Part shown: piece after piece, positions 25,008 to 45,500 of the stretch
Numbering within the stretch: the first letter of the stretch is position 1
Layout: the number at the start of each line of letters is the position of its first letter
Assembly: GCA_021613535.1 (NCBI GenBank)
Contig: CP075492.1
Location: 11,594,001-11,658,000 of the forward strand
Origin: Adineta vaga
Lineage: Eukaryota > Animalia > Rotifera
Direction: 5' to 3'
Length of the DNA stretch: 64,000 nucleotides
Made by a program: the position numbers and the translations under genes
Notes under the pieces: generated by a model
Database searches by the model: none
Seen by the model: only the letters and a program-made list of their open reading frames with translations
Told to the model about the DNA's origin: nothing

Positions 25008-26125
25008 ATGAATACTACAGACGTACATTACGATCAACTTTTGTCGTTGTTCAAAAAAATGAACTCGAACAAATCAATCATTATATCTATGCGATCGTAT
25101 TTCCTATCATATTTGTTTTTGGTTTAATTGGTAATTTATTTTCATCAATTATTTTCTCAATAACTAAACTTAATCAAACATCATGCGGAATATATTTTCT
25201 TCTACTTGCAATTTTTGATTCATTAGCATTAATCGGTGGTTTACATCATTGTTTAACAATTGGATATCATGTTCAAGTACGAAATGCAAACTACTGTCGT
25301 GTACGAAATTTTCTTTTATATACATCAATGGATATGACTTCATGGATGATTGTAGCTGTTTCCGTTGATCGTTGTTTAAAAGTTAAATTTCCTATTAAAG
25401 CACGAATGTATGCAACGAGAAAATTAGCAATTATTGTTTCATGTGTAATAACATTGATTTTTATATTGAAAAATATTCATTTATTAACAATTTTTATTGG
25501 AGATTTTACTGATGATGCTGCAGATAATTGTGATCCCAATCCAAACTATCCAACATACATGTTTTTCTTTAAAAATATTTGGCCATGGATTGATCTTACT
25601 ACCTTTGCTTTATTACCTTTTATTATTGTTACAATATGTAACATAATAATCATTTCGGATCAATATAAAAGACGTTTAAAATTACGTAAACGTAATCTTG
25701 ATCTTTCCTTAATAACATTACTTTTAGTTAGTTCAATCTTATTAATTCTTTGTAATCTTCCAATAACAATTCTTGCAGTTATTTATCCGTATATTTCAAT
25801 TTCATATGATACCAATGTAATTTATGATAATGTTGCATTTGCATTTGATCTCCTTCGATTACCATCTTATGTATCATTAGCATTGAACTTTTATTTATAT
25901 TATTATACATCGATTTTATTTCGTCAGCAAACTGTTCGTCTTTTTCGACGTTTATTTCGTCTTCAAACAAAGACAAATGAAATTGAACTACCAAATCGAA
26001 TATATACATTTGAAAATCGATATACAAATCGAATGGATTCACTAGACGAAGTCGAAGAGGATCAACAAACACCAATACCTTCGATAGTCGGCAGTAGTTT
26101 CATCTCAAACTTTTATAAACAATAA
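25008..26125 (+). CDS. Class A (rhodopsin-like) peptide-receptor-type GPCR; 5' end uncertain
   Basis: TM1 IFVFGLIGN, TM2 LAIFD, TM3 VSVDRC, TM6 LCNLP, TM7 LNFYLY. The frame is open from 24980 but the ATG at 25008 (MNTT) is out of frame. Confidence 0.85.
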
Positions 26126-29245: not shown

Positions 29246-29851
29246 ATGACATTAATTACACAAGCAAATTTCATTGATAAACTAAATCATCAATATAATT
29301 CCAAAATTCAAGATAATCTAAAAACTCTTTCTTTCAATGTCTATTCGTCTCGACATTTATCATCAACATCGAAATCAACTAAATATCATCGATCTGATCT
29401 TCCTATACTGCCTTCCATTACGAAAGATGAATATCAATATCAAAGAAAAACCAAACGTCCAACGTATCGTACATCTGTATATCATTCACTTGTATCCAAT
29501 GTCACTCCAGTTGATTTACCAGTCATTAATTCTCATCGACCCAAACCAAAACTCTTCACAATTCTTCGAGATGAATCATTCACACATTTTCGACGTCGTC
29601 CAGATCCACCACCCACACCATCAGATGATTTTCTAGATCACGCATCGGCAGAAACCAATCGAACAAGACAAACATCACCACAATTATATACAACTGATGA
29701 TGATTATGATAATGATGATGGTTTTATCCCATATCGTTTACCTGCACTCCATCAATCAACAAAACAAATGCGAACCGAAAAATATCTCACACGTCAACAT
29801 CCCAAAACAGTTTTATCTGACTATTATCAAACTTTGTATTCAAAATACTAA
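29246..29851 (+). CDS. Uncharacterised 201-aa protein, likely disordered
   Basis: Intact single-exon ORF with coding-like composition, divergent from PDIA3; no domain recognised. Confidence 0.65.
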   Translation: MTLITQANFIDKLNHQYNSKIQDNLKTLSFNVYSSRHLSSTSKSTKYHRSDLPILPSITKDEYQYQRKTKRPTYRTSVYHSLVSNVTPVDLPVINSHRPKPKLFTILRDESFTHFRRRPDPPPTPSDDFLDHASAETNRTRQTSPQLYTTDDDYDNDDGFIPYRLPALHQSTKQMRTEKYLTRQHPKTVLSDYYQTLYSKY

Positions 29852-30659
29852 TTTGCCTTTTTTTAAATTCGTGTATTCACAATACGCACGTTAGCATAAC
29901 AATTCTTTTCATTGACGAGAAAGCATACGGTAGCAATAGATTTGATCATTTGTTTTAATTAGATGTCCTCGAGAAGAGTTTTTAAAGAGTATTTCAAATT
30001 GACCTTGGATCAATTTATTTGATATGAAAAGGTTATATGCGCTGATTACAGACAAACAACTTGTCGATGATAAACACTTCACTATTCGGGAAGAATGATT
30101 TAATAATAAAGAACGTTTAAATCATGACTGTAAAATTTTATATTTGTTCTTGAAACATGTGTGACTTCAAGTACGGCAGCTGAGGACATAGGACATGAAA
30201 TATTCGACGAAGAATCAAAACAAAAGCACATATCGTCAAAATTGAATATGTATTTTCGATCTTTCTAGACTAAAAGTTCGACTGAATTGAACAAATTTCG
30301 TCTATTTTTTCGTTAGATATTTCGATATGTCTGACGAGGACATTATGACCCCTTGTATAGTTCTGTTAACAAAGAAAGCGAGAGAGTGATATCATTCATT
30401 GTTCTTTGTAAATAACAATGAAAAGAAGATGATGATGTGATGATTACGTCGGCCAACATGTTCACAGCTCGGTATAAATAGTCGATGTCAACTTATTTCG
30501 TGTTATTCAAGAAAGGCATTCTTACGTAATAAAGTCTTTCGATTACTTTTATTTATCGACATTTTAAAATCCAATCAAATACTTTGAGAGGTAAGTTTGA
30601 AAATCAATCAAAATTTCATCGATAGAATCATATATTTTCTTTAGGAGAAATTAAACAAA

Positions 30660-33600
30660 ATGAAAATTAGCTTATTTGTCGCTTTGTTGGTGCTTGTAGC
30701 AGCAACAAATGTCTACGGTGAAGAAAGACCGCGAAATAGTGGACGAACATCGCGTCCAACTAGTGATAATGGCACAATTGTAGTTGATCGAACAAAATCT
30801 ACAAATCTTGATGATGGTACAATTGTAGTTGATCGAACAAAATCTACAAAACTTGATGATGGTACAGTTGTAGTTGATCGAACAAAAGCTACAAATCTTG
30901 ATGATGGCACAGTCGTAGTTGATCGAACAAAATCTACAAACCTTGATGATGGTACAATTGTAGTTGATCGAACAAAATCCAAAAATCGTGATGATGGTAC
31001 AATTGTAGTCGATCGAACAAAATCCAGAAATCGTGATGATGGTACATTTGTAGTTGATCGAACAAAATCCAGAAATCGTGATGATGATACAGTTGTAGTT
31101 GATCGAACAAAATCCAAAAATCGTGATGATGATACAGTTGAAGTCGATCGAACAAAATCCAAAAATCGTGATGATGGTACAATTGTAGTTGATCGAACAA
31201 AATCCAAAAATCGTGATGATGATACAGTTGAAGTCGATCGAACAAAATCTAAAAATCGTGATCGTGATGAAATCAACGGCGAAGATCGTGATGATAAGAA
31301 ATTTAATATGGACACTAAAGATACCTTCGATAATGAAACACCATCTAAATTTGACAATGGTAACCGACGTATTCCAAAAAAGAAAGGATCTTTGAAATCG
31401 GATGAACATGATAATTTTGAAAAACTTGAAGGAAAAGATCATCAAGCACCAAATGATATGGAAGAAGATGATGATAAAAAACATTTATCAGGCAAAGATC
31501 GTCTCGCTGATTTAGACGAAAAGAAAAAAGGCAACGAGCAAGATAATATCAAAGTCGATATCAACGTATGTATTAAAACGTTCCGATTTTAATATGAAAT
31601 AAGTATTTGTATGGAATTTTTATTTTAGCCTGTTCGTCTTTCTGCCAAAACTGTTCATGCCTATGGTAACATCGTTCTTACTAAATTTCGTCCATCACTT
31701 GTCGATCCAGTACAATATGATCTTGACGGTTCATTCGCCATTAATAATGCTAACCAACAAGAAACTCGACCAGTTTCACCTTATGCTCGTGATTTTCTTG
31801 CACGTGGAAGTCGTGTTACACTTTATGTTTCAACATCAAAAACAACTAATCCAAAAATGGCTTTCGCCAAATTTCCCATTACATACAAAAAGGATAACTT
31901 TCCACTTACTTTCGATGTTGAAATTGAATTACCTGATAAACAACGTGGTCTTCTTGAACGTGCCGATATTACATTATATTTCTTTGTTTATATCACTGAT
32001 TCAGAACGACTCATTGAGACATTTCTTCCAGCTGGTACAAGTCAACTTCTTTTACAAGGAACAGATCGTAATGTTCGTCCACTCGATGTTTTCATTCGTG
32101 CTAATGGTGTTGAAATCAATGGTTTATTCCGTGGTAAATTTAGTCAACGATTTATTCAACCTGGAACTGTTTTTCAAATTCTCGTTGTTGATGGAAAAAC
32201 TCTTCGACAAGAGTCAATTTCAACAACTGATGCCGTTGCTCAATTAACAATTAGTAACGTTCCAGCTATGTTTCCAGTTCCATTCTCATTCTTAGTACAT
32301 TATCAAACATTAAAACCAAATACAAAATATTATGCTGTCGCATACATTTTTGAAAATGGTGTTCGTCGTTTAATCAACCAAGGACCTATCTGGATTATTA
32401 ATGAACAAAAACTTGCTGTTACAACACAATTGATCTTTACTGTTATTCCATCACCATTCATTTTGAGAGGTACAATTACACGTTCAATGCCAGGCACATT
32501 TGTTGTTCAACCTGATTCTTCAATTGTTCTTACTCTTCATGCCATTAATACCAATGAACCTGATATTGTCTTCCGTGTTCCAAAGATTAATTCATTTCCA
32601 CAACTCTTTTCAATCAATGTCAGTCAATCAAGTCGATTTGATCCATCAAAAAATTATGAACTCTCCGCACAAATTACTGACAAAAACAACGATATTTATA
32701 TGATTAGTTTACAATCCATTCAACTTACTGATGATATCGATAAGATTATTCTTCCAGTCGATGATTATCTTCACTATGTAAATGTTCGTCTTCAATCATC
32801 AACAAGTCAACAATTAACATTTATTCCAGGTAGTAACCTTCGAGTTCTTCTTACTGAAACACCTGAAATACCATCAAAACCACGTGTTAGCATGACTATT
32901 GAACGTATTCCAAATGATTTCCGTGAATTTACAATGAAAATTCCAACAACAGGTATTCAACGTAATCGAAATTATTATATAGTTTTAATGATTGAAATCA
33001 ACGGTATTATTACTCATGTCTCGAAAACTTTACTTATTTCAAATAATCAACCACCTCCACTTGTTATTCAATTACCAGTACTTTCACTCAATTTAATTCG
33101 TGGTGTTATCAATGATGTTGATCAACGTCCAGCACAATGGACATCATCAGCTACTGCTAAACTTTATTTACTTGATGATACTGTTTCTGATCTTGAACAA
33201 GCTATCGTTCAATCATGGACAATTCATTTAGAAAATGATTTTCCCATTCGTTTCGAAGTTCAAGTTGACTTTAGTCGTCTTCATGCAGGTCGTATTTATC
33301 GTTTACAAAGTGCCATTGAAAGTGGACGCAATCTCTTCGAATATAAACCAGCTAGTAGTGCTATTGCTGTTGACGCACGTACTGGTGTTCGCAATGATGT
33401 TCGCGTTTTCGTACGTAATGTCAAAGTATTTCAATTGATCAAAGGTCTTGTTCATATTCAAGGTGTTAAAGGACCATTACCAGAAAAAAGTGAAATCATC
33501 ATTCAACTTACTTCATCACCATCATTAGTTAATCCAAAAGTTGTTGATGAACTTCGTATTAAAGTTGATAACCGTACTTTACCAATTGATTTTGCAATGG

Positions 33601-34575
33601 AATTACCAATAAACAAGATTGATATCAATGCTGTCTATTACTTCCTTGTTCGATACACCGTTCGTGATAGTGTTGTTATTCCAGTTAGTCAAGCATTTGC
33701 TTTTGCACCACGTAATCAAGCAACTATTGTTATTTCATTATCAAGAACACCACAAGTTTCCGTTACTGGTCAAGTTACATCAACTGGTAGTGCACTTGAA
33801 TTACCACGTGGAGCAACTTTACACTTATACATTACCGATAATCTCGATGAAGAAAAACGATCTATCATCTCGGAAGTCTTTCTTCAATCAACACCAAACA
33901 GTCTCTATGAATTCCGTATGCTTGTTGATTCAATTATGCTTCAAAAGAAAACTCCACTCTATCTTCGTGGTGATATTATTTATGAAGATGCAGTTATCTT
34001 ACGTATGCCACGACCAGCTTTACTTCAATTAACAGCCGGTAGTGAATGGAATATCAATTTAGTTATCGATTTACCAACACTTGTTATCGGAGAAATTGTC
34101 TCACTTACAAATAATTTGAAAGTTCATGGTGAATTTGATGTTTATATTCAAGTTTTCGTAGCTGCTTCAAAACAGGTTATTCATACAATACGTTTACGTC
34201 TTGATGCTAATTTACCACAACGATTCCGTATTGAACTTGATAATAAATTTTTACTACGTAATTCAGACTTGAAAATCCGTGCTCTTATTAAAAATTGCAA
34301 AGAAGAAACTTTATATGAAAGTAGCAATGACGTTAGCATTCATATTGGTCTCAATTTGAACACAAGATTAACTGTTGCTGTCAATGATATGAGTATGTAG
34401 AATATTTCGTTTATTTCTCTTAAGAAATCAATATTCTCGTTTAGAAAAACTTACCGAACTTCGTCCCAATGTTGATGAAAGTGCTTCATTATATGCTGGT
34501 AAATGGAAAACAGTCATTGCTGGTACCGAAAATCAAGCAAAATCTGGTGAACTTATCCTAGTCGGTCAAAAATAA
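30660..34575 (+). CDS. Large secreted protein: signal peptide, 15-aa repeat region, charged linker, about 8 tandem YbaY/YscW-like beta domains
   Basis: Three coding exons (introns ~31566-31628 and ~34393-34444), a 5'UTR intron at ~30591-30644, TATAAATA at ~30473. Repeated ~110-aa units such as VTGQVTSTGSALELPRGATLHLYI and FPIRFEVQVDFSRLHAGRIYRLQSAI. Confidence 0.85.
30765..31259 (+). repeat. Coding tandem repeat, 45-nt unit x 11 (DDGTIVVDRTKSKNR)
   Basis: Directly visible in the DNA and in the 310-aa ORF translation. Confidence 0.95.
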
Positions 34576-35361
34576 TTCTTTTTTTCATAGTTTTACCAAC
34601 TTTTTCCTCTCAATAATATTTAACAATGCCTTTCTTGCGATAATAAAATACTTTTAATTCTTTCTGCTTATGTACCATCCTTTAGCAATGTATTTTCTAA
34701 AATTTTAACATAAAATAAAACGATTTATTTATATTATATTTTAAATTGTAAGCATTCGTCGTTTTTTTTGCGCCCATCCATCCAATCTACAATAAACATC
34801 TGGTAGATATTATGAGCCTAGTACCGACTTACTTATAGTACATTCGATATCTAAATTAGAAATAAGATATCTATCTTGTTATAAAACAGAATTCGTTCTT
34901 CGAACTTTTTGTTAAATCAAAGTACATGAATTTGATTAGAGAAACTAGTTGATCAAATGATGTTTGTATTACATCTACAAAAATCTGACAATTGGTTGAC
35001 GTGACTAATAAGACAAAGTAGATAGATAAAATATGCTTTACATTGCATTATCTATTTCAAATCCAATAGAGTTAAAGAAAAATATGAGAACAAAAGGCTA
35101 CTAATACATAATCAATCACATTTTAATATCTTTTTTCTTTTAAATAAAAGGAAGAGTATATTCAATATTGATAATCCTTTTCTTTGATCTGTAATGTTGC
35201 ATTTCTTAATATTCTTTTCTATCGGATACCTAACCTACTTGTAGGATATAATTACTAGATAAAACTATCGACTCGTCACACGAATGACTATCCATATCAC
35301 GCAATGTATGTTGAATAAAACATTCGTTTGTACTTAAAAATGAGTCATCAGTTTTGTATCT

Positions 35362-35588: not shown

Positions 35589-36992
35589 ATGATGTTGACT
35601 GCTTACCGTGTTATAGCATTGATTCTTTTTTGTCTTGTGTATATTGTTGGTTTAATTGGAAATGGACTATTGATTTGTAAGTATTAAATTTATGAAAAAA
35701 AGATATCATTCGTTTATTTTTCTCGAATAATCTAGTTATTGTATTTCGTCAAAAAAATCTACGAACAGTACCAAATTTACTTGTTGTTAGTTTAGCATTA
35801 GGTGATTTTTTGTTCGTATTATTCTGTGTTCCATTTGGTGCTGTTGCTTATTCACTTGAATATTATCCATTTTCAACATTTTATTGTCGTTTTGAGAATT
35901 TTATTATCAATCTCTCTCTTGGCGTTTCAGTCTTTTCCTTATTAGCCCTCAGCGCTGATCGATATAAAATCATTGCTAGACCATTAGCAAGTCATGCGAA
36001 TGATCCATCAAATCAATTGAAAATTATCGTTCTTTTTATTTGGTTAATTGCAATCATTTTAGCCATACCTGAAACAATCTATAGTGGTAAGATTTCGTCT
36101 AAAACTTAATTCTTTGACAAACAAATGATCTCTCTCATTATAGGTATTATTACCGAACGAATATTTCAAGCAGATAATTCAACAATTGAATTAGTTTATT
36201 GTTGGAGTCCAAACACACATTCGTTACTTGTGAATCATACATTTATGATTATTCGTCAAATTTTACGTTTAATTATTTATTATCTTATGCCATTTATATG
36301 TATATCAGTATTTTATAGTTTAATTGCTAAAACATTATTCAATACAAGAAATGTTATCTATTCACCGAATAGATCAGCACGTAACATTCAAACGAATCTC
36401 AATGATGAAACTAATCGTATTCAATTAAATTCGAATTCAAAACTTTATTATCATTCTCAAGCAACTCGAACGATGAAACAAGATTTTCGTGCAAGAAAAC
36501 AATTACAAGCAAGACAAAAAGTAGCGAAAACTGTTCTATTTCTATGTTTAGTCTTTTTCATCTGTTGGTTACCAAAACAACTTCATGATCTATATTGGTA
36601 CAGTAATCCTATTCTCTTTTCTTAGAAAAAAAAAACAGAATCCTTTCAATTTTCTTAGGTTCATCGGTGTACTTGTATATTCATTCGATTGGAACTTGTT
36701 TTGGCAAATCAATAAAACAATTGCTTTAATATTAACTTATGTCTATTCATGTATTAATCCGTTTGCACTCTATTTTCTTTCATCAACATTCCGGTATTTT
36801 TATAAGCGTCATTTATTCTTTTGGACAAAAACCAATCGTTGTATTCATCGACAAGTTATCAAATCGAAAAAACGACCAATGACAAGTTCAACAAATTATC
36901 CACGTTGTTCATCAATGAATAATTCAAGTACAATCTATTATGAATTAAATCGTCTTAAAACATCCAAATATTATCGACAACAAAGTCCATAA
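35589..36992 (+). CDS. Neuropeptide GPCR, CCHamide/bombesin/endothelin receptor-like
   Basis: VGLIGN, LRTVPNLLVVSLALGD, GVSVFSLLALSADRY, RQKVAKTVL..FFICWLP, YSCINPFALYFLSSTFR; three short introns. Start uncertain. Confidence 0.85.
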
Positions 36993-39197: not shown

Positions 39198-39712
39198 AAA
39201 GACTACAGAACATTTTTCTACTATGGAAGTATCTTTGTTACAGTTGCGGTTCTGTATTCAATGTTTTGATTATATACATTCTTTTATCCTATCTATTTAT
39301 TACAAACAACAATAACAATATACCATCAATTTTCTCTCGCTTTTTATAGATACACTCTATTCATTCATAGGCAATAGAACGTCATTGAATTGACAGTAAA
39401 TTTCCTTGTCAGTAATTAATACAATTGAGTACTCACAAGAAGGTAATTAGAAGTCATAATATAGATTAATATAGATCATCAAAAAATATCTCTGAAATGT
39501 TAGGAACGTGTTTTTTTCCTCTTCATATTTGTTCTTTTCCTCCGCATGATTTTTTAATGATTACTAATTTCAAATCAGTCAAGCAAGGTTTAATGATTTT
39601 CGTCTTTATCTTTATTTATATACTAAATATTTATAGGAAAAAATAGAATTTCATGCTTTTCTCTTTCGCGTCTATTTATAGAAGAAGAAAAATATATATA
39701 TATCAATTGATC

Positions 39713-40930
39713 ATGTCGTATAATGATACAATATCAGCATCATGTTCGCTTACAGAAAGTGATTTACTTCGTGATACATTTACACATAAAGTTTATCTCG
39801 GTTTGACACCATTTATTATTTGTATTGGATTATTGGGCAATATTCTTACTGTTTGTGTATTTATATTAACTGATCTTAAAAAACAATCCGTTTCAATAAT
39901 AACAATTGCGTTAGCTATTGTTGATTCATTTGTTCTACTCATTCCTGTCTCAATATTATGGTTGGAAAAAATCTTAAGACAAGAATTTACTGATCTTTCA
40001 TCATTCTGGTGTCGTACACATGGTTCGTCAAGAGAAAAGATTTTTTTTTTCATTGAAAATCTTCTGTTTTTAGGTTTTTTTGATTTAGCTTTTACATGCT
40101 GTTCAAGTTGGTTAATGGTATGCATAGCATTTGAACGTTTTTGTGCTGTTTGGTTACCACATAATAATAAAACAATATTTACACATTCTCGAACACTTCG
40201 TCTTGTTCTAATTATTGTTATTCTTTCCACAAGTTTATCAATATGGTTTATATTTGCTGTTAAAATGAGTCAAGTTTCATATACAACAACTCTCGATGAA
40301 TTATTAATATTTTCAACAAATCAAACAATAAATTCTGATTCTAAATGTAAAGTTTATGATGATAGTCTTTATGATTCAATGGGAATGTCATCGGTTATAA
40401 TGAATTATATTTTACCATTTATTCTTGTTTTATTATTAAATTCTACAATTATTTATCGTTTATGTCAACGTGGAATGGTTGAATTAACTTCATCAATAAC
40501 TGTTATGTTAACACTTGTTTGTTTAGTACATTTATTTTGTACATTACCATTTCAATGTTGGTGGATCTATTATGAAATACCTGATCGAACAGGTAATTGT
40601 ACATGGTTAAAAACAAAATTAATCTGGCGAACAATTACATTTACAATACGAAATATGAATTATATGGCCAATTTTTTTCTCTATTCTTGTTCATCAAAAT
40701 TTTTTCGTGATGAACTAAAAGGTTTAATTTTCTTATGTTTATTACCACATGAAAAATATCAAAATTATCATTATCGTCGACAATCTTTATATGATAATCT
40801 TCAACAACGTGTATCATTAACTCAATTAGTTATGCGACGTTTAAGTCGAGCAACTGAATTTACGAATGGTGGCGTGATTAATAATCCATCGACTGCTAAT
40901 ATACACAATGGACCCATTGGAAATGTGTAA
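39713..40930 (+). CDS. Class A GPCR, FMRFamide/peptide-receptor-like
   Basis: IGLLGN, LAIVD, IAFERFCAVWLP, YILPF, FCTLP, NYMANFFLY; probable stop-free 51-nt intron at 40023-40073. Confidence 0.88.
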   Translation: MSYNDTISASCSLTESDLLRDTFTHKVYLGLTPFIICIGLLGNILTVCVFILTDLKKQSVSIITIALAIVDSFVLLIPVSILWLEKILRQEFTDLSSFWCRTHGSSREKIFFFIENLLFLGFFDLAFTCCSSWLMVCIAFERFCAVWLPHNNKTIFTHSRTLRLVLIIVILSTSLSIWFIFAVKMSQVSYTTTLDELLIFSTNQTINSDSKCKVYDDSLYDSMGMSSVIMNYILPFILVLLLNSTIIYRLCQRGMVELTSSITVMLTLVCLVHLFCTLPFQCWWIYYEIPDRTGNCTWLKTKLIWRTITFTIRNMNYMANFFLYSCSSKFFRDELKGLIFLCLLPHEKYQNYHYRRQSLYDNLQQRVSLTQLVMRRLSRATEFTNGGVINNPSTANIHNGPIGNV

Positions 40931-42573: not shown

Positions 42574-45500
42574 TCATGACTCAAGAAAATCTTCAAACAC
42601 ACTAATTTCGATATCATTTGTTTTATCAGATAGAACTAATTGATTAGTTTTTAAATAGGAAATATCATAAAGATGTATGTTAGATAAATAATGAAAAAAT
42701 GAACTCAATTCATTGATATTCGTTATTGTTCGTAGACGAAGATATGGACAAGTTAATGTAGGAATGATTGATAATGATTGAAATTTTTCGTCAAATAATT
42801 TCGATATACGAATGGAAAAACTTGTAAATGTATCAGGTAATGAAAGTTGATTGTGTATATTTTGATCAACAACAAATGCTGATCGAAATCTAGAAAAGAA
42901 TTCCAATTAATTATCGAATAATATTGTCAATTTACTTACAATTGAAAATGGTATAATTCTGAAGAAGGAATTGCTATGAGTACATCAAGTAGTTTCGATC
43001 CATATAAATAAAGTGTCAATGAAGGATTTGAAATTAAGTCTGTTCGTTGTATAGGTAATCTAAAGAATAGAATCATGTGATATAGAATTATGTTTCAAAT
43101 CATCATCATCTTGCTTACTTCGTATCTTCTTCAATAGTTACTGTAAGATCTTCTTCAATTTTTAGTAGAATATGAATCAATTCTGCCATAATGATTGGCC
43201 AAAATGAAACTAAATTTTTACTCGATATTCTAATCAATAAAACACGTAATAGGAGAAATAATTGTATATGTAGTACTGGTATTTGTGGTAATTTAAGTAA
43301 ATCAGTAATACAAGTAAGTATTTCAGGTAAATATTGATTATATTGATCTTTTTCTGATGCATAGATAACAAAAGCAAAACGTTTAATAAGCATCGCACGT
43401 TGTTCATATTCTTGTTCTTTCGAAACAAATAAACCTGTTTGAATTGTACTAATTCGATTGAAAACATCACGAAACGTTGATTTACCATTCGTTACTAAAT
43501 TATCAATAATTACTTTCCATGTACGTAATATAGAAATATCAACTTGAAAGAATCCACTATCAAATAATTGCTCAAAAACATCTTTTTTCCATGTTTTTCT
43601 TGTATAGGAATAGTGTGAGATATTCATGAGTAGAATCGATGCTGTTCGATAGGATGCAACATGTGTACGAACATAAGGCATTAGATTTGGTATAAGATTT
43701 TGTAAATAAGGAAGAACAACACGATCTCTATCATCAGTTAGATTATAGACAACATCAAGTAATTTTGCTGCATGTTCAGCTAGAATTGTCAATGTGTTTA
43801 AACTGGAATTTTTCGATTGAGAAGTATCTAGAAGAAAGAATGAAGAATTGGCGGAGATTATTCATCAAAGAAGACAGACCATCGACATCTAAAATTGGAC
43901 TTTCATTATCAGTTTCAGAAGATGAATCGTTGACAGTTTCGGAATCAGCTTGATCACGACGTACTTGTAAATTTTTACGTAACCAAGTTGTTTGTTTAAG
44001 TGATGAAGCGACTATTGTATTACATTGTTCCAGAACTTTCATTGTTATTTCCTATTTTTAAAGAAAAACACATCATTGATATTCTATGACAAGAAAAAAT
44101 ACATACTTGAAAATCTTTTAAATCACGTTTTTCAACAAAAACTGGTGATTGTTTTACAAAGTAACTCAATATTCTATAAATAAATCTGAATTACTAGTTT
44201 GTTGCAAGTATATTTCATACTTTATTATCAAAAATATTATTGATGATGACATTGATTGTGCTAGACATTCTTTAAACATAGCCGCTAACATGGACCAATA
44301 CTCAATGGAAAGATTCTTCTGTTGTTCGAAATAGGTCAAAAGAAATTGTAAACACCATACAATATAATTCTGTTTTTTCTAAAGAAAAATCTTATCAAAC
44401 GAACTATTTTTCTCTTAATAACTTTACTTTATCATTTTTTACCGATTGATTTTGAATAATAAGTTCATTAATATAATAAATAAGATCATTTATTGTTGGA
44501 TTATTGATGTTAATTAGAATATAAATCAACATTTGCTTTTCATCTATATTATCTTTCATTAATTTACTTTCGCCCCAATATTGTGCAACTGCACGCATAA
44601 ATGATACACCATGGGATTTGATTAATAGAGAAATCAATTCGAGAATTGTTTCACGTATCTGTTTGATATTACTATTAATCCAAATGGAATTTGTTTGATC
44701 AATACCAATCGTTTTCCATATGAATAAAAGACTCGAAAGAATTAATGGAAATTTTTTTAACATCGATCGACGTGCATCCGAGACATCAATGGTATTAATT
44801 GATAACTAAAAATAGAATTTAGTTTAAAAATAGAAATTAATCATATCTATTTACTCTTTTCGTCCAATGTTGAGGACATAAAATTGGAGTAAAATGTTGA
44901 AAATTATTCGTCGTAGTACCAAGACAATAATTACAAATGTATGAAAGACGTTCGATCAAGTAAATGATATAATCAAGAGTATCAAATGTTGATAAATCTC
45001 TAGCAGTAAAGAATTGCTTATCAAAAAATGAATTCTTCTATGATTCATTCTTACTTGAATTTCACTTGAATATCTTGTTGATTATGATATTGTGCAATGA
45101 AACATAAATTTCGACAAATTTGAACAATTATTCGAGTACTGATCGTCTTCAATGCTGATCCACAATGAGGTAATATTCTTACGACTAAACTGATTATATA
45201 TCGATGATTTTCAATGAAATGAATTTGTTTTAAATAATTTAAAATAGTAGAAAGAAAAATATCTTGTTGAACAATGAATTGTTGAATTAAATTGAGATCT
45301 GTTAATGAAATAAGATTTTCTAGGAGAATTATTTCTTCTAATAATTGAATTAATTGCTTTAAATATTGTTTCATTGATTGTTCATGTAAAACTTCTTTAT
45401 TGAAATTACAAATCAATGTTAATTGTAAAAAATCTGATGTTGGATTTATAATTCGATTGAATAAACATAAAATAATCTTTTGAAATGCGACTTTTTTCAA

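Follow-up and report, generated by a model that had tools for sequence, protein, structure and literature searches.

An array of eight units, several of them YscW domains, in a putatively secreted bdelloid rotifer protein of probable bacterial ancestry

Organization of the gene

The stretch analysed here, referred to as the window, comprises 64,000 nucleotides of chromosomal DNA from Adineta vaga, a bdelloid rotifer, and all coordinates are given as window positions. Its + strand carries a gene of three coding exons, the second of which encodes eight tandem units related in part to the YscW family (PF09619) of bacterial lipoproteins. The exon model was obtained from the listing of open reading frames (ORFs) and from direct reading of the sequence, the segment 31629-34575 beginning with exon 2, taking in intron 2 and ending at the stop codon in exon 3. 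When exon 2 was used in a protein search, it gave a 100% match to the deposited A. vaga hypothetical protein I4U23_014490 (P0001, 1266 amino acids, aa), which is encoded on a 20.35-Mb contig. The translations of exons 1 and 3 are exactly residues 1-302 and 1225-1266 of that protein, and the exon model proposed here is therefore the deposited one. The gene was searched exon by exon, I4U23_014490 serving only as a reference for comparison, and no further copy of it was found elsewhere in the 64-kb window. The features of the gene are the following, all on the + strand (UTR, untranslated region; L004 and L005, contigs carrying orthologues).

30472-30479, + strand: TATA-like box (tataaata), read from the sequence and putative in function, about 50 bp upstream of the start of the L005 alignment
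30591-30644, + strand: spliceosomal intron of the 5'UTR, 54 bp, GT..AG; exactly these bases are missing from L005, which aligns on either side
30660-31565, + strand: coding exon 1, 302 aa, with signal peptide, charged repeats in tandem and a low-complexity linker of acidic/basic character
30660-30719, + strand: putative signal peptide, the first ~20 aa, hydrophobic, recognized by eye
30763-31262, + strand: tandem repeat of 45 bp (15 aa), 11.1 copies, 92% matches (Tandem Repeats Finder)
31566-31628, + strand: intron 1, 63 bp, phase 0, GT..AG, at the precise boundary of N-terminal region and unit 1
31629-34392, + strand: exon 2, 921 codons plus one base, without stop
31629-32102, + strand: unit 1, 158 aa, beta-sandwich with disordered insert (exon-2 residues 1-158)
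32103-32450, + strand: unit 2, YscW-like domain (residues 159-274)
32451-32765, + strand: unit 3, YscW-like domain (residues 275-379)
32766-33083, + strand: unit 4, beta-sandwich unit, the most diverged (residues 380-485)
33084-33422, + strand: unit 5, the best-preserved YscW domain (residues 486-598)
33423-33746, + strand: unit 6, YscW-like domain (residues 599-706)
33747-34067, + strand: unit 7, probable YscW-like domain (residues 707-813)
34068-34391, + strand: unit 8, probable YscW-like domain, with the single cysteine (residues 814-921)
34393-34444, + strand: intron 2, 52 bp, phase 1, missing from the transcript contig L005
34445-34575, + strand: exon 3, C-terminal tail and TAA stop, without hydrophobic anchor
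34576-34700, + strand: 3'UTR with AATAAA at 34642-34647; part of this 3'UTR is conserved in those of L005 and L004

An earlier examination of the same DNA without database searches (the sequence-only reading) had described a signal peptide and a repeat region upstream of the units, together with spliceosomal introns, a TATA box and a eukaryotic signal peptide lacking a lipobox cysteine, and all of these were recovered. The introns are three in number, one in the 5'UTR and two in the coding sequence, each of GT-AG type. Exon 1 contains no cysteine, hence there is no lipobox, and the whole protein has only one cysteine, at exon-2 residue 890.

A Pfam scan gave no family in exon 1 or exon 3, and a word-based search of 5.8 billion proteins retrieved only three weak fragments for exon 1. 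Among the orthologues the signal peptide is conserved and is followed by a charged tandem repeat that differs in unit and copy number from species to species, the repeat region measuring ~100 to 300 aa. The N-terminal repeat region turns over quickly and the eight-unit array behind it stays fixed. The C-terminal tail (about 43-45 aa) is conserved among the orthologues, and the C-terminus is hydrophilic. The tail holds a motif of the G-x-W-x-L-S-V-T-G-V-V kind, resembling the beginning of YscW strand 1 (V-T-G-T-V), and exon 3 may be the vestige of a ninth YscW unit.

Identity of the eight units

Exon 2 was cut at the strand-1 motif, which gave eight abutting units of 105-116 aa, except for unit 1, whose 158 aa include the disordered insert. 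About eight units of ~110 aa had been announced by the sequence-only reading; eight were found, its series of motifs occurs in each of them, and the example quoted there is unit 5. In the Pfam scan the YscW family matched the whole of exon 2 in five stretches with E=7.4e-24 and 84.6 bits, where the curated cut-off is 22.6 bits, and no immunoglobulin (Ig), fibronectin type III (FN3) or transthyretin family was matched; the NCBIfam scan of exon 2 gave no family. When the units were scanned singly, unit 5 reached 28.6 bits (E=2e-6), above the cut-off, followed by unit 6 with 22.3 bits (E=1.7e-4), unit 2 with 18.4 bits (E=0.0028) and unit 3 with 15.1 bits (E=0.03), and no YscW match was obtained for units 1, 4, 7 and 8.

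A hidden Markov model (HMM) built from 39 bacterial domains only matched exon 2 with 99 bits (E=9e-30). Unit by unit this model gave 30 bits for unit 5, 19 for unit 2, 17 for unit 6, 12 for unit 3, 10 for unit 8, 8 (7.8) for unit 7 and 3 for unit 4, and nothing in unit 1. In profile-profile comparisons by hhalign, in which 25 orthologues per unit were set against the bacterial domain alignment, the values were 97% for unit 5, 95% for unit 6, 94% for unit 3 and 92% for unit 2; units 8 and 7 aligned in register with 47% and 37%, respectively (E=3.7e-4 for unit 7). Between the units themselves the same program gave 95% for the pair 8 and 5, 82% for 4 and 7, and 72% for 1 and 5. The alignment of rotifer and bacterial domains is in register, with three invariant residues, namely the G of strand 1, the P of P-x-x-F and the Y of Y-x-x-x-A-x-I. 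A jackhmmer search started from one bacterial domain recruited all eight units in the six bdelloid proteins tested (6/6), a result that is partly circular because rotifer units enter the profile.

It follows that the eight units are real and that units 2, 3, 5 and 6 are YscW domains beyond doubt. Units 7 and 8 probably belong to the same family, and units 1 and 4 may be assigned to it through transitive similarity and the structure model only. The YbaY/YscW identity proposed at first for all units thus stood for the four that are individually significant, became marginal for units 7 and 8, and could not be detected directly in units 1 and 4.

Structure models

The AlphaFold2 model of exon 2, computed with an alignment of 25 orthologues, is an all-beta chain with a mean predicted local distance difference test (pLDDT) value of 77.5. 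The same order of 7-8 strands was found in every one of the eight units; the linkers between units have 2-4 residues, and the disordered insert occupies residues 21-54 of unit 1.

The separate fold test was made on one unit, unit 5. Modelled alone with an alignment of orthologues and bacterial domains, it reached a pLDDT of 94.4, and its top Foldseek match in the PDB was 5WEC, described as an alternative pilotin for type II secretion in Vibrio cholerae, with a template modelling score (TM) of 0.76 and a root-mean-square deviation of 2.7 A over 111 columns. The second match was ExsB, which is the pilotin of a type III secretin in Pseudomonas aeruginosa (2YJL, TM 0.60), the remaining matches having E>8e-3. 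For this unit, the check by AlphaFold and Foldseek that had been proposed with the sequence-only reading ended in its favour. By sequence, 5WEC also matches the joint domain profile (E=4.5e-29), and 2YJL was reached through the fold only; a PDB sequence search with the profile made from orthologues only gave no match.

A Foldseek search with the whole 921-aa model was uninformative and was replaced by the single-unit model. It returned generic multi-beta-sandwich proteins with TM 0.06-0.13, among them members of the alpha-2-macroglobulin family, a mastigoneme protein and a grappling-hook protein.

Distribution among bdelloids and bacteria

The length-matched protein search with exon 2 yielded 47 proteins, all with E<1e-170. 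Those with a species name all come from Bdelloidea, namely Adineta vaga, A. steineri, four species of Rotaria and Didymodactylos carnosus; the others are metagenome or transcriptome entries, several of which bear the automatic Joint Genome Institute (JGI) name 'uncharacterized lipoprotein YbaY'. The 47 orthologues are colinear across the full 921 residues, almost free of insertions and deletions, and 47-70% identical. Every bdelloid genus sampled has the gene, and the order of its eight units is identical throughout.

When the orthologue profile was run without length filter against 1.84 billion representative proteins, 32 matches were obtained, mostly members of the family and fragments of them. 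Next came bacterial proteins with 2-5 tandem YscW domains, the best at E=4e-11, which have L-x-x-C lipoprotein leaders and lie in bacterial gene neighbourhoods. No real match in any non-bdelloid animal was found among these 1.84 billion proteins, so that the real matches are bdelloid and bacterial only. The sequence-only reading had named as the contrary outcome units of ordinary Ig, FN3 or transthyretin type, with orthologues widespread in animals and without a YbaY match, and this is not what emerged: the family matched was YscW, and no orthologue was found beyond the bdelloids in these proteins.

The sole animal match outside bdelloids, a pipefish protein (P0062, Corythoichthys intestinalis, 2667 aa, E=5.6e-10), was rejected as an artefact. 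Its score adds up 11 near-identical matches, each of 3-7 bits, within an ADGRF3_N array of 21 repeats, and the protein has no YscW match. Because eleven sub-threshold matches are summed in this way, the E-value of a full sequence should not be trusted where the repeats of an array are nearly identical. In the word-based searches, unit 5 alone retrieved nothing, and relatives of smaller or greater length did not turn up either.

Bacterial genomes were scanned with one genome per species, six closely related bacterial domains being used as alignment. At least 495 YscW-type loci were found across many phyla, including Cyanobacteria, Chloroflexota, Acidobacteriota, Myxococcota, Gemmatimonadota, Deinococcota, Planctomycetota, Bacteroidota and Proteobacteria, the last with Vibrio cholerae and Pseudomonas. 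Among the best 80 of these loci, 78 of the 81 domain-bearing ORFs hold one domain and three hold 3-4, all three of them from Chloroflexota. The statement of the sequence-only reading that the bacterial domain is usually single is borne out by these counts, yet arrays of 2-5 domains do exist, and tandem YscW arrays are not a rotifer invention. The largest bacterial array seen has 5 units (P0063), compared with 8 in the rotifer. The bacterial architectures encountered include fasciclin together with four YscW domains (P0069), a multicopper-oxidase fragment with three (P0064) and the five-domain protein P0063.

Phylogeny, introns and gene neighbourhood

In the domain tree (102 columns) each of the units 1 to 8 forms its own clade with members from Adineta, Rotaria and Didymodactylos, with support of 93-100 except for unit 5 and with stems of 1-2.3 substitutions per site. 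Since every unit is a cross-genus clade of its own, all eight units predate the divergence of these genera. The bacterial domains lie on one side of a single branch whose support is only 17, and the order of branching between units is likewise unsupported at depth. The per-domain phylogeny suggested at the outset thus placed the units before this divergence, and it left their relation to the bacterial domains without support.

Both intron positions of the coding sequence are common to A. vaga and Rotaria sordida. In the orthologue of Didymodactylos carnosus the position of intron 2 is kept and intron 1 is absent. As a side observation, the D. carnosus locus L086 4001-8356 shows several apparent extra introns within the eight-unit region, and tblastn at >95% identity did not retrieve its residues 452-555; these oddities could stem from a true gain of introns or from a faulty gene model. 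In Adineta and Rotaria the bacterial-type sequence is contained in one exon framed by introns, which suggests exon capture during domestication.

The gene is set within a cluster of rhodopsin-family GPCR ORFs, and the ORFs around it are the following (GPCR, G-protein-coupled receptor).

25328-26125, + strand: rhodopsin-family GPCR (7tm_1, Pfam)
29246-29851, + strand: ORF of 201 aa directly upstream of the gene, without Pfam family
36125-36625, + strand: rhodopsin-family GPCR (7tm_1, Pfam)
39653-40930, + strand: rhodopsin-family GPCR (7tm_1, Pfam), matching in addition nematode-type Srw/Srx chemoreceptor models
43115-43792, - strand: C-terminal ORF of DOP1

The upstream ORF 29246-29851 has a counterpart beside the Rotaria sordida orthologue (L087 2679-3278; 41% identity, E=8e-28), as has the downstream GPCR at 36125 (57.5%, E=3e-42), and the R. 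sordida orthologue lies between the two counterparts in the same order and orientation as in A. vaga. Contamination is excluded by the presence of introns, by the length of the contig (20 Mb), by the metazoan genes nearby and by the synteny with Rotaria.

Expression and constraint

More than 20 orthologues are located on contigs of 3.5-4.2 kb whose entire content is the uninterrupted ORF and ~70-130 nt on either side of it. One of them, L005, encodes a protein 70% identical to that of A. vaga and reads straight across the junction of exons 2 and 3. We take these intron-less contigs to be spliced transcripts; read in this manner, they support the gene model and the expression of the family. The gene may also be a convenient molecular marker of bdelloids, because full-length transcripts recur in environmental assemblies.

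The ratio of nonsynonymous to synonymous substitution rates (dN/dS), estimated roughly for exon 2 by the NG86 method, was 0.24 against L005 and 0.59 against L004, and was similar in all eight units. The synonymous rate against the distant orthologue L004 (0.48) was lower than that against the closer L005 (0.74), possibly owing to saturation, to codon bias in AT-rich genomes or to limits of the method. Because of this inconsistency between the two comparisons the ratios were taken qualitatively only; in these terms they point to purifying selection on every unit of a protein that evolves fairly fast.

Proposed origin of the array

The explanation that accounts best for these data, and which we consider probable, is that of a foreign YscW gene which has been domesticated to encode a secreted extracellular chain. 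That it was acquired horizontally and domesticated before the bdelloids radiated is well supported. A bacterial lipoprotein gene would have been acquired horizontally prior to that radiation, its lipoprotein leader would have been replaced by a host exon providing a eukaryotic signal peptide and fast-evolving charged repeats, and a short tail exon would have been added. The resulting protein, free of a membrane anchor and nearly free of cysteine, would be secreted.

Several points weigh against this explanation. Cleavage of the signal peptide and secretion were judged by eye and not by a dedicated predictor. The hhalign comparison with the bacterial profile gives only 4% for unit 1 and 3% for unit 4, and sequence alone does not demonstrate YscW there. 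No donor clade can be named, the best bacterial match being at E=4e-11 and the deep branches having a support of 17. The absence from other eukaryotes refers to protein databases and not to tblastn searches across the whole genomes of monogononts, seisonids and acanthocephalans. The evidence of expression comes from orthologues and not from the A. vaga copy itself, and the relative placement of the units in the AlphaFold2 model is unreliable (predicted template modelling score 0.37).

The sequence-only reading had supposed a horizontally acquired domain that was amplified in tandem and domesticated. Foreign origin and domestication were upheld, and amplification after the transfer is not shown by the tree, whose deep branches are unsupported. 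It is a tentative but serious possibility that the donor itself had a multi-domain array, a lipoprotein with tandem YscW similar to those of Chloroflexota having been transferred whole, with little or no amplification in the rotifer. The best non-bdelloid matches are indeed lipoproteins of bacteria in which 2-5 YscW domains stand in tandem, soil Chloroflexota (L009, L046, L049) have arrays of this type, and the rotifer units are as distant from one another as from bacterial domains. However, multi-domain proteins score higher merely through the summing of domains, no bacterial protein was seen with more than 5 units, and the rotifer units pair with no particular bacterial positions in the tree. 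In addition, the domains of one bacterial protein mostly cluster together, from which amplification appears to be easy and recurrent.

That the gene is not foreign at all is scarcely credible: it would then be either a fast-evolving metazoan Ig-like protein resembling YscW, as the listing of YscW among the Ig-like families of the broad Ig-like/E-set group (PMC8877628) and the generic matches of the whole-chain fold search might allow, or a bacterial contaminant of the assembly, but the PF09619 match lies far over the cut-off, the solved bacterial structure 5WEC matches the joint profile, no animal homologues beyond bdelloids were found in protein databases, and contamination is excluded by the arguments given above.

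Possible functions

A domesticated and secreted protein of this type would form an extended chain of rigid domains outside the cell, about 30 nm in length, acting as a structural scaffold or as a multivalent binder. A beta-sandwich domain of this kind is usually ~4 nm long, and the length of ~30 nm follows from this value if the units are in line. The term 'rigid rod' is deduced from the linkers of 2-4 residues and from the lack of insertions and deletions, the placement of the units being not confidently modelled. The disordered charged repeats at the N-terminus would represent a variable end, possibly interacting with water or surfaces. The rotifer protein would not act as a pilotin, because an animal has neither a secretin partner nor the context of a secretion system.

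A cuticular, adhesive or desiccation-related role, as put forward in the sequence-only reading, would be conjectural. A function as extracellular protectant against desiccation or osmotic stress, in which the charged disordered repeats and the stable cysteine-free beta domains would shield surfaces, is unlikely on present evidence. It would be consistent with the charged disordered N-terminal repeat, with the near absence of cysteine, with the occurrence of the gene in all bdelloid genera sampled and with the strong induction of E. coli ybaY by salt shock (bioRxiv 10.1101/2025.05.13.653802), but regulation in E. coli tells little about an animal gene. Moreover, YscW, YbaY, PF09619 and COG3126 are absent from the supplementary tables of the A. 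vaga desiccation/radiation and spaceflight transcriptomes, which is a weak argument as such tables may omit Pfam names.

It is tempting to speculate, as something quite unlikely, that the pilotin fold has been turned into an abundant secreted eight-valent protein with a new function outside the cell, used either for binding envelope structures of Gram-negative bacteria that serve as food or cause infection, or as a cysteine-free, drying-resistant scaffold in anhydrobiosis. If this were true, an animal would for the first time be seen to have made a large protein of structural or immune function out of a bacterial envelope chaperone domain. A related and very improbable explanation is that of a multivalent binder which has kept the peptide-binding surface of pilotins in order to agglutinate, capture or disarm Gram-negative food or pathogens. 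The fold is that of secretin-binding pilotins, which bind a helix of the secretin S-domain (PMC6532946), eight units would give avidity, and each unit has surface motifs of its own that are strongly conserved across genera. Set against this, only the core residues (G, P, Y) are common to the bacterial domains, and for most members of the family, YbaY among them, no secretin partner is known.

Comparison with known systems

No paper linking YscW, YbaY, PF09619 or COG3126 with rotifers was found in the literature. The domain itself has already been flagged by automatic annotation, in the form of a precomputed PF09619 match and of the name 'YbaY' given to several orthologues.

Chains of Ig-like domains, such as the stalks of bacterial fibrillar adhesins and the macroglobulin arrays of alpha-2-macroglobulin and CD109, have the same all-beta 'beads on a string' layout. 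The likeness is generic (TM 0.06-0.13) and there is no sequence relationship; unlike these proteins, that of the rotifer has no thioester, no anchor and no adhesive tip domain. As regards fibrillar adhesins, the tandem array is present, and an anchor and a tip domain were not found in the Pfam scan of exons 1 and 3 or at the hydrophilic C-terminus.

Closer are the bacterial tandem-YscW lipoproteins, with five domains in P0063 and four in P0067 and P0061, from metagenome-assembled genomes of Anaerolineae, Thermoflexales and Chloroflexia, which show the same head-to-tail arrays with short linkers. They differ in having 2-5 units of 30-68% mutual identity, whereas the rotifer units are barely recognizable to each other, and also in their lipoprotein leader, proline-rich stalks, occasional fasciclin fusions and bacterial neighbourhoods.

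Bdelloids hold very many foreign genes, and one more is unsurprising by itself. Most of the foreign genes known to be kept by them encode enzymes. What is unusual here is a non-enzymatic domain, an eight-unit architecture and a deep conservation of the unit order, introns and synteny, together with the indication that the YbaY/YscW fold can be of use apart from secretins. The domesticated trehalose-6-phosphate synthase (PMC4498783) and N4-cytosine methyltransferase (PMC10406627) of bdelloids resemble the present gene as bacterial-type sequences that lie in a bdelloid chromosome, contain introns, are expressed and are conserved among bdelloids; they are enzymes, in contrast to a non-catalytic structural or binding domain in what would be a large secreted protein. 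The gene offers a clean model of domestication, since its bacterial part is one exon framed by a host-type exon for signal peptide and repeats and by a tail exon, and it would place a bacterial envelope domain in a secreted animal protein conserved since before the split of Adineta and Rotaria.

The nearest relatives are the PF09619 YscW and COG3126 YbaY lipoproteins, represented by E. coli YbaY, the V. cholerae protein of 5WEC, Pseudomonas ExsB (2YJL) and Yersinia YscW, which have the same beta-sandwich domain of ~105 aa. The likeness consists in an HMM match above the cut-off, in motifs that are in register and in TM values of 0.76 and 0.60. In bacteria these are envelope lipoproteins of small size, for the most part with one domain, which have a lipobox cysteine and some of which pilot secretins, whereas in the rotifer there are eight units, a eukaryotic signal peptide and introns, and neither a lipid anchor nor a secretin context, the gene having rhodopsin-type GPCRs, a conserved ORF and DOP1 as neighbours. 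The YscW/YbaY family is in this way extended into animals, where the piloting of secretins is impossible; this points to a more general property of the domain, independent of secretins, which would bear on E. coli YbaY as well.

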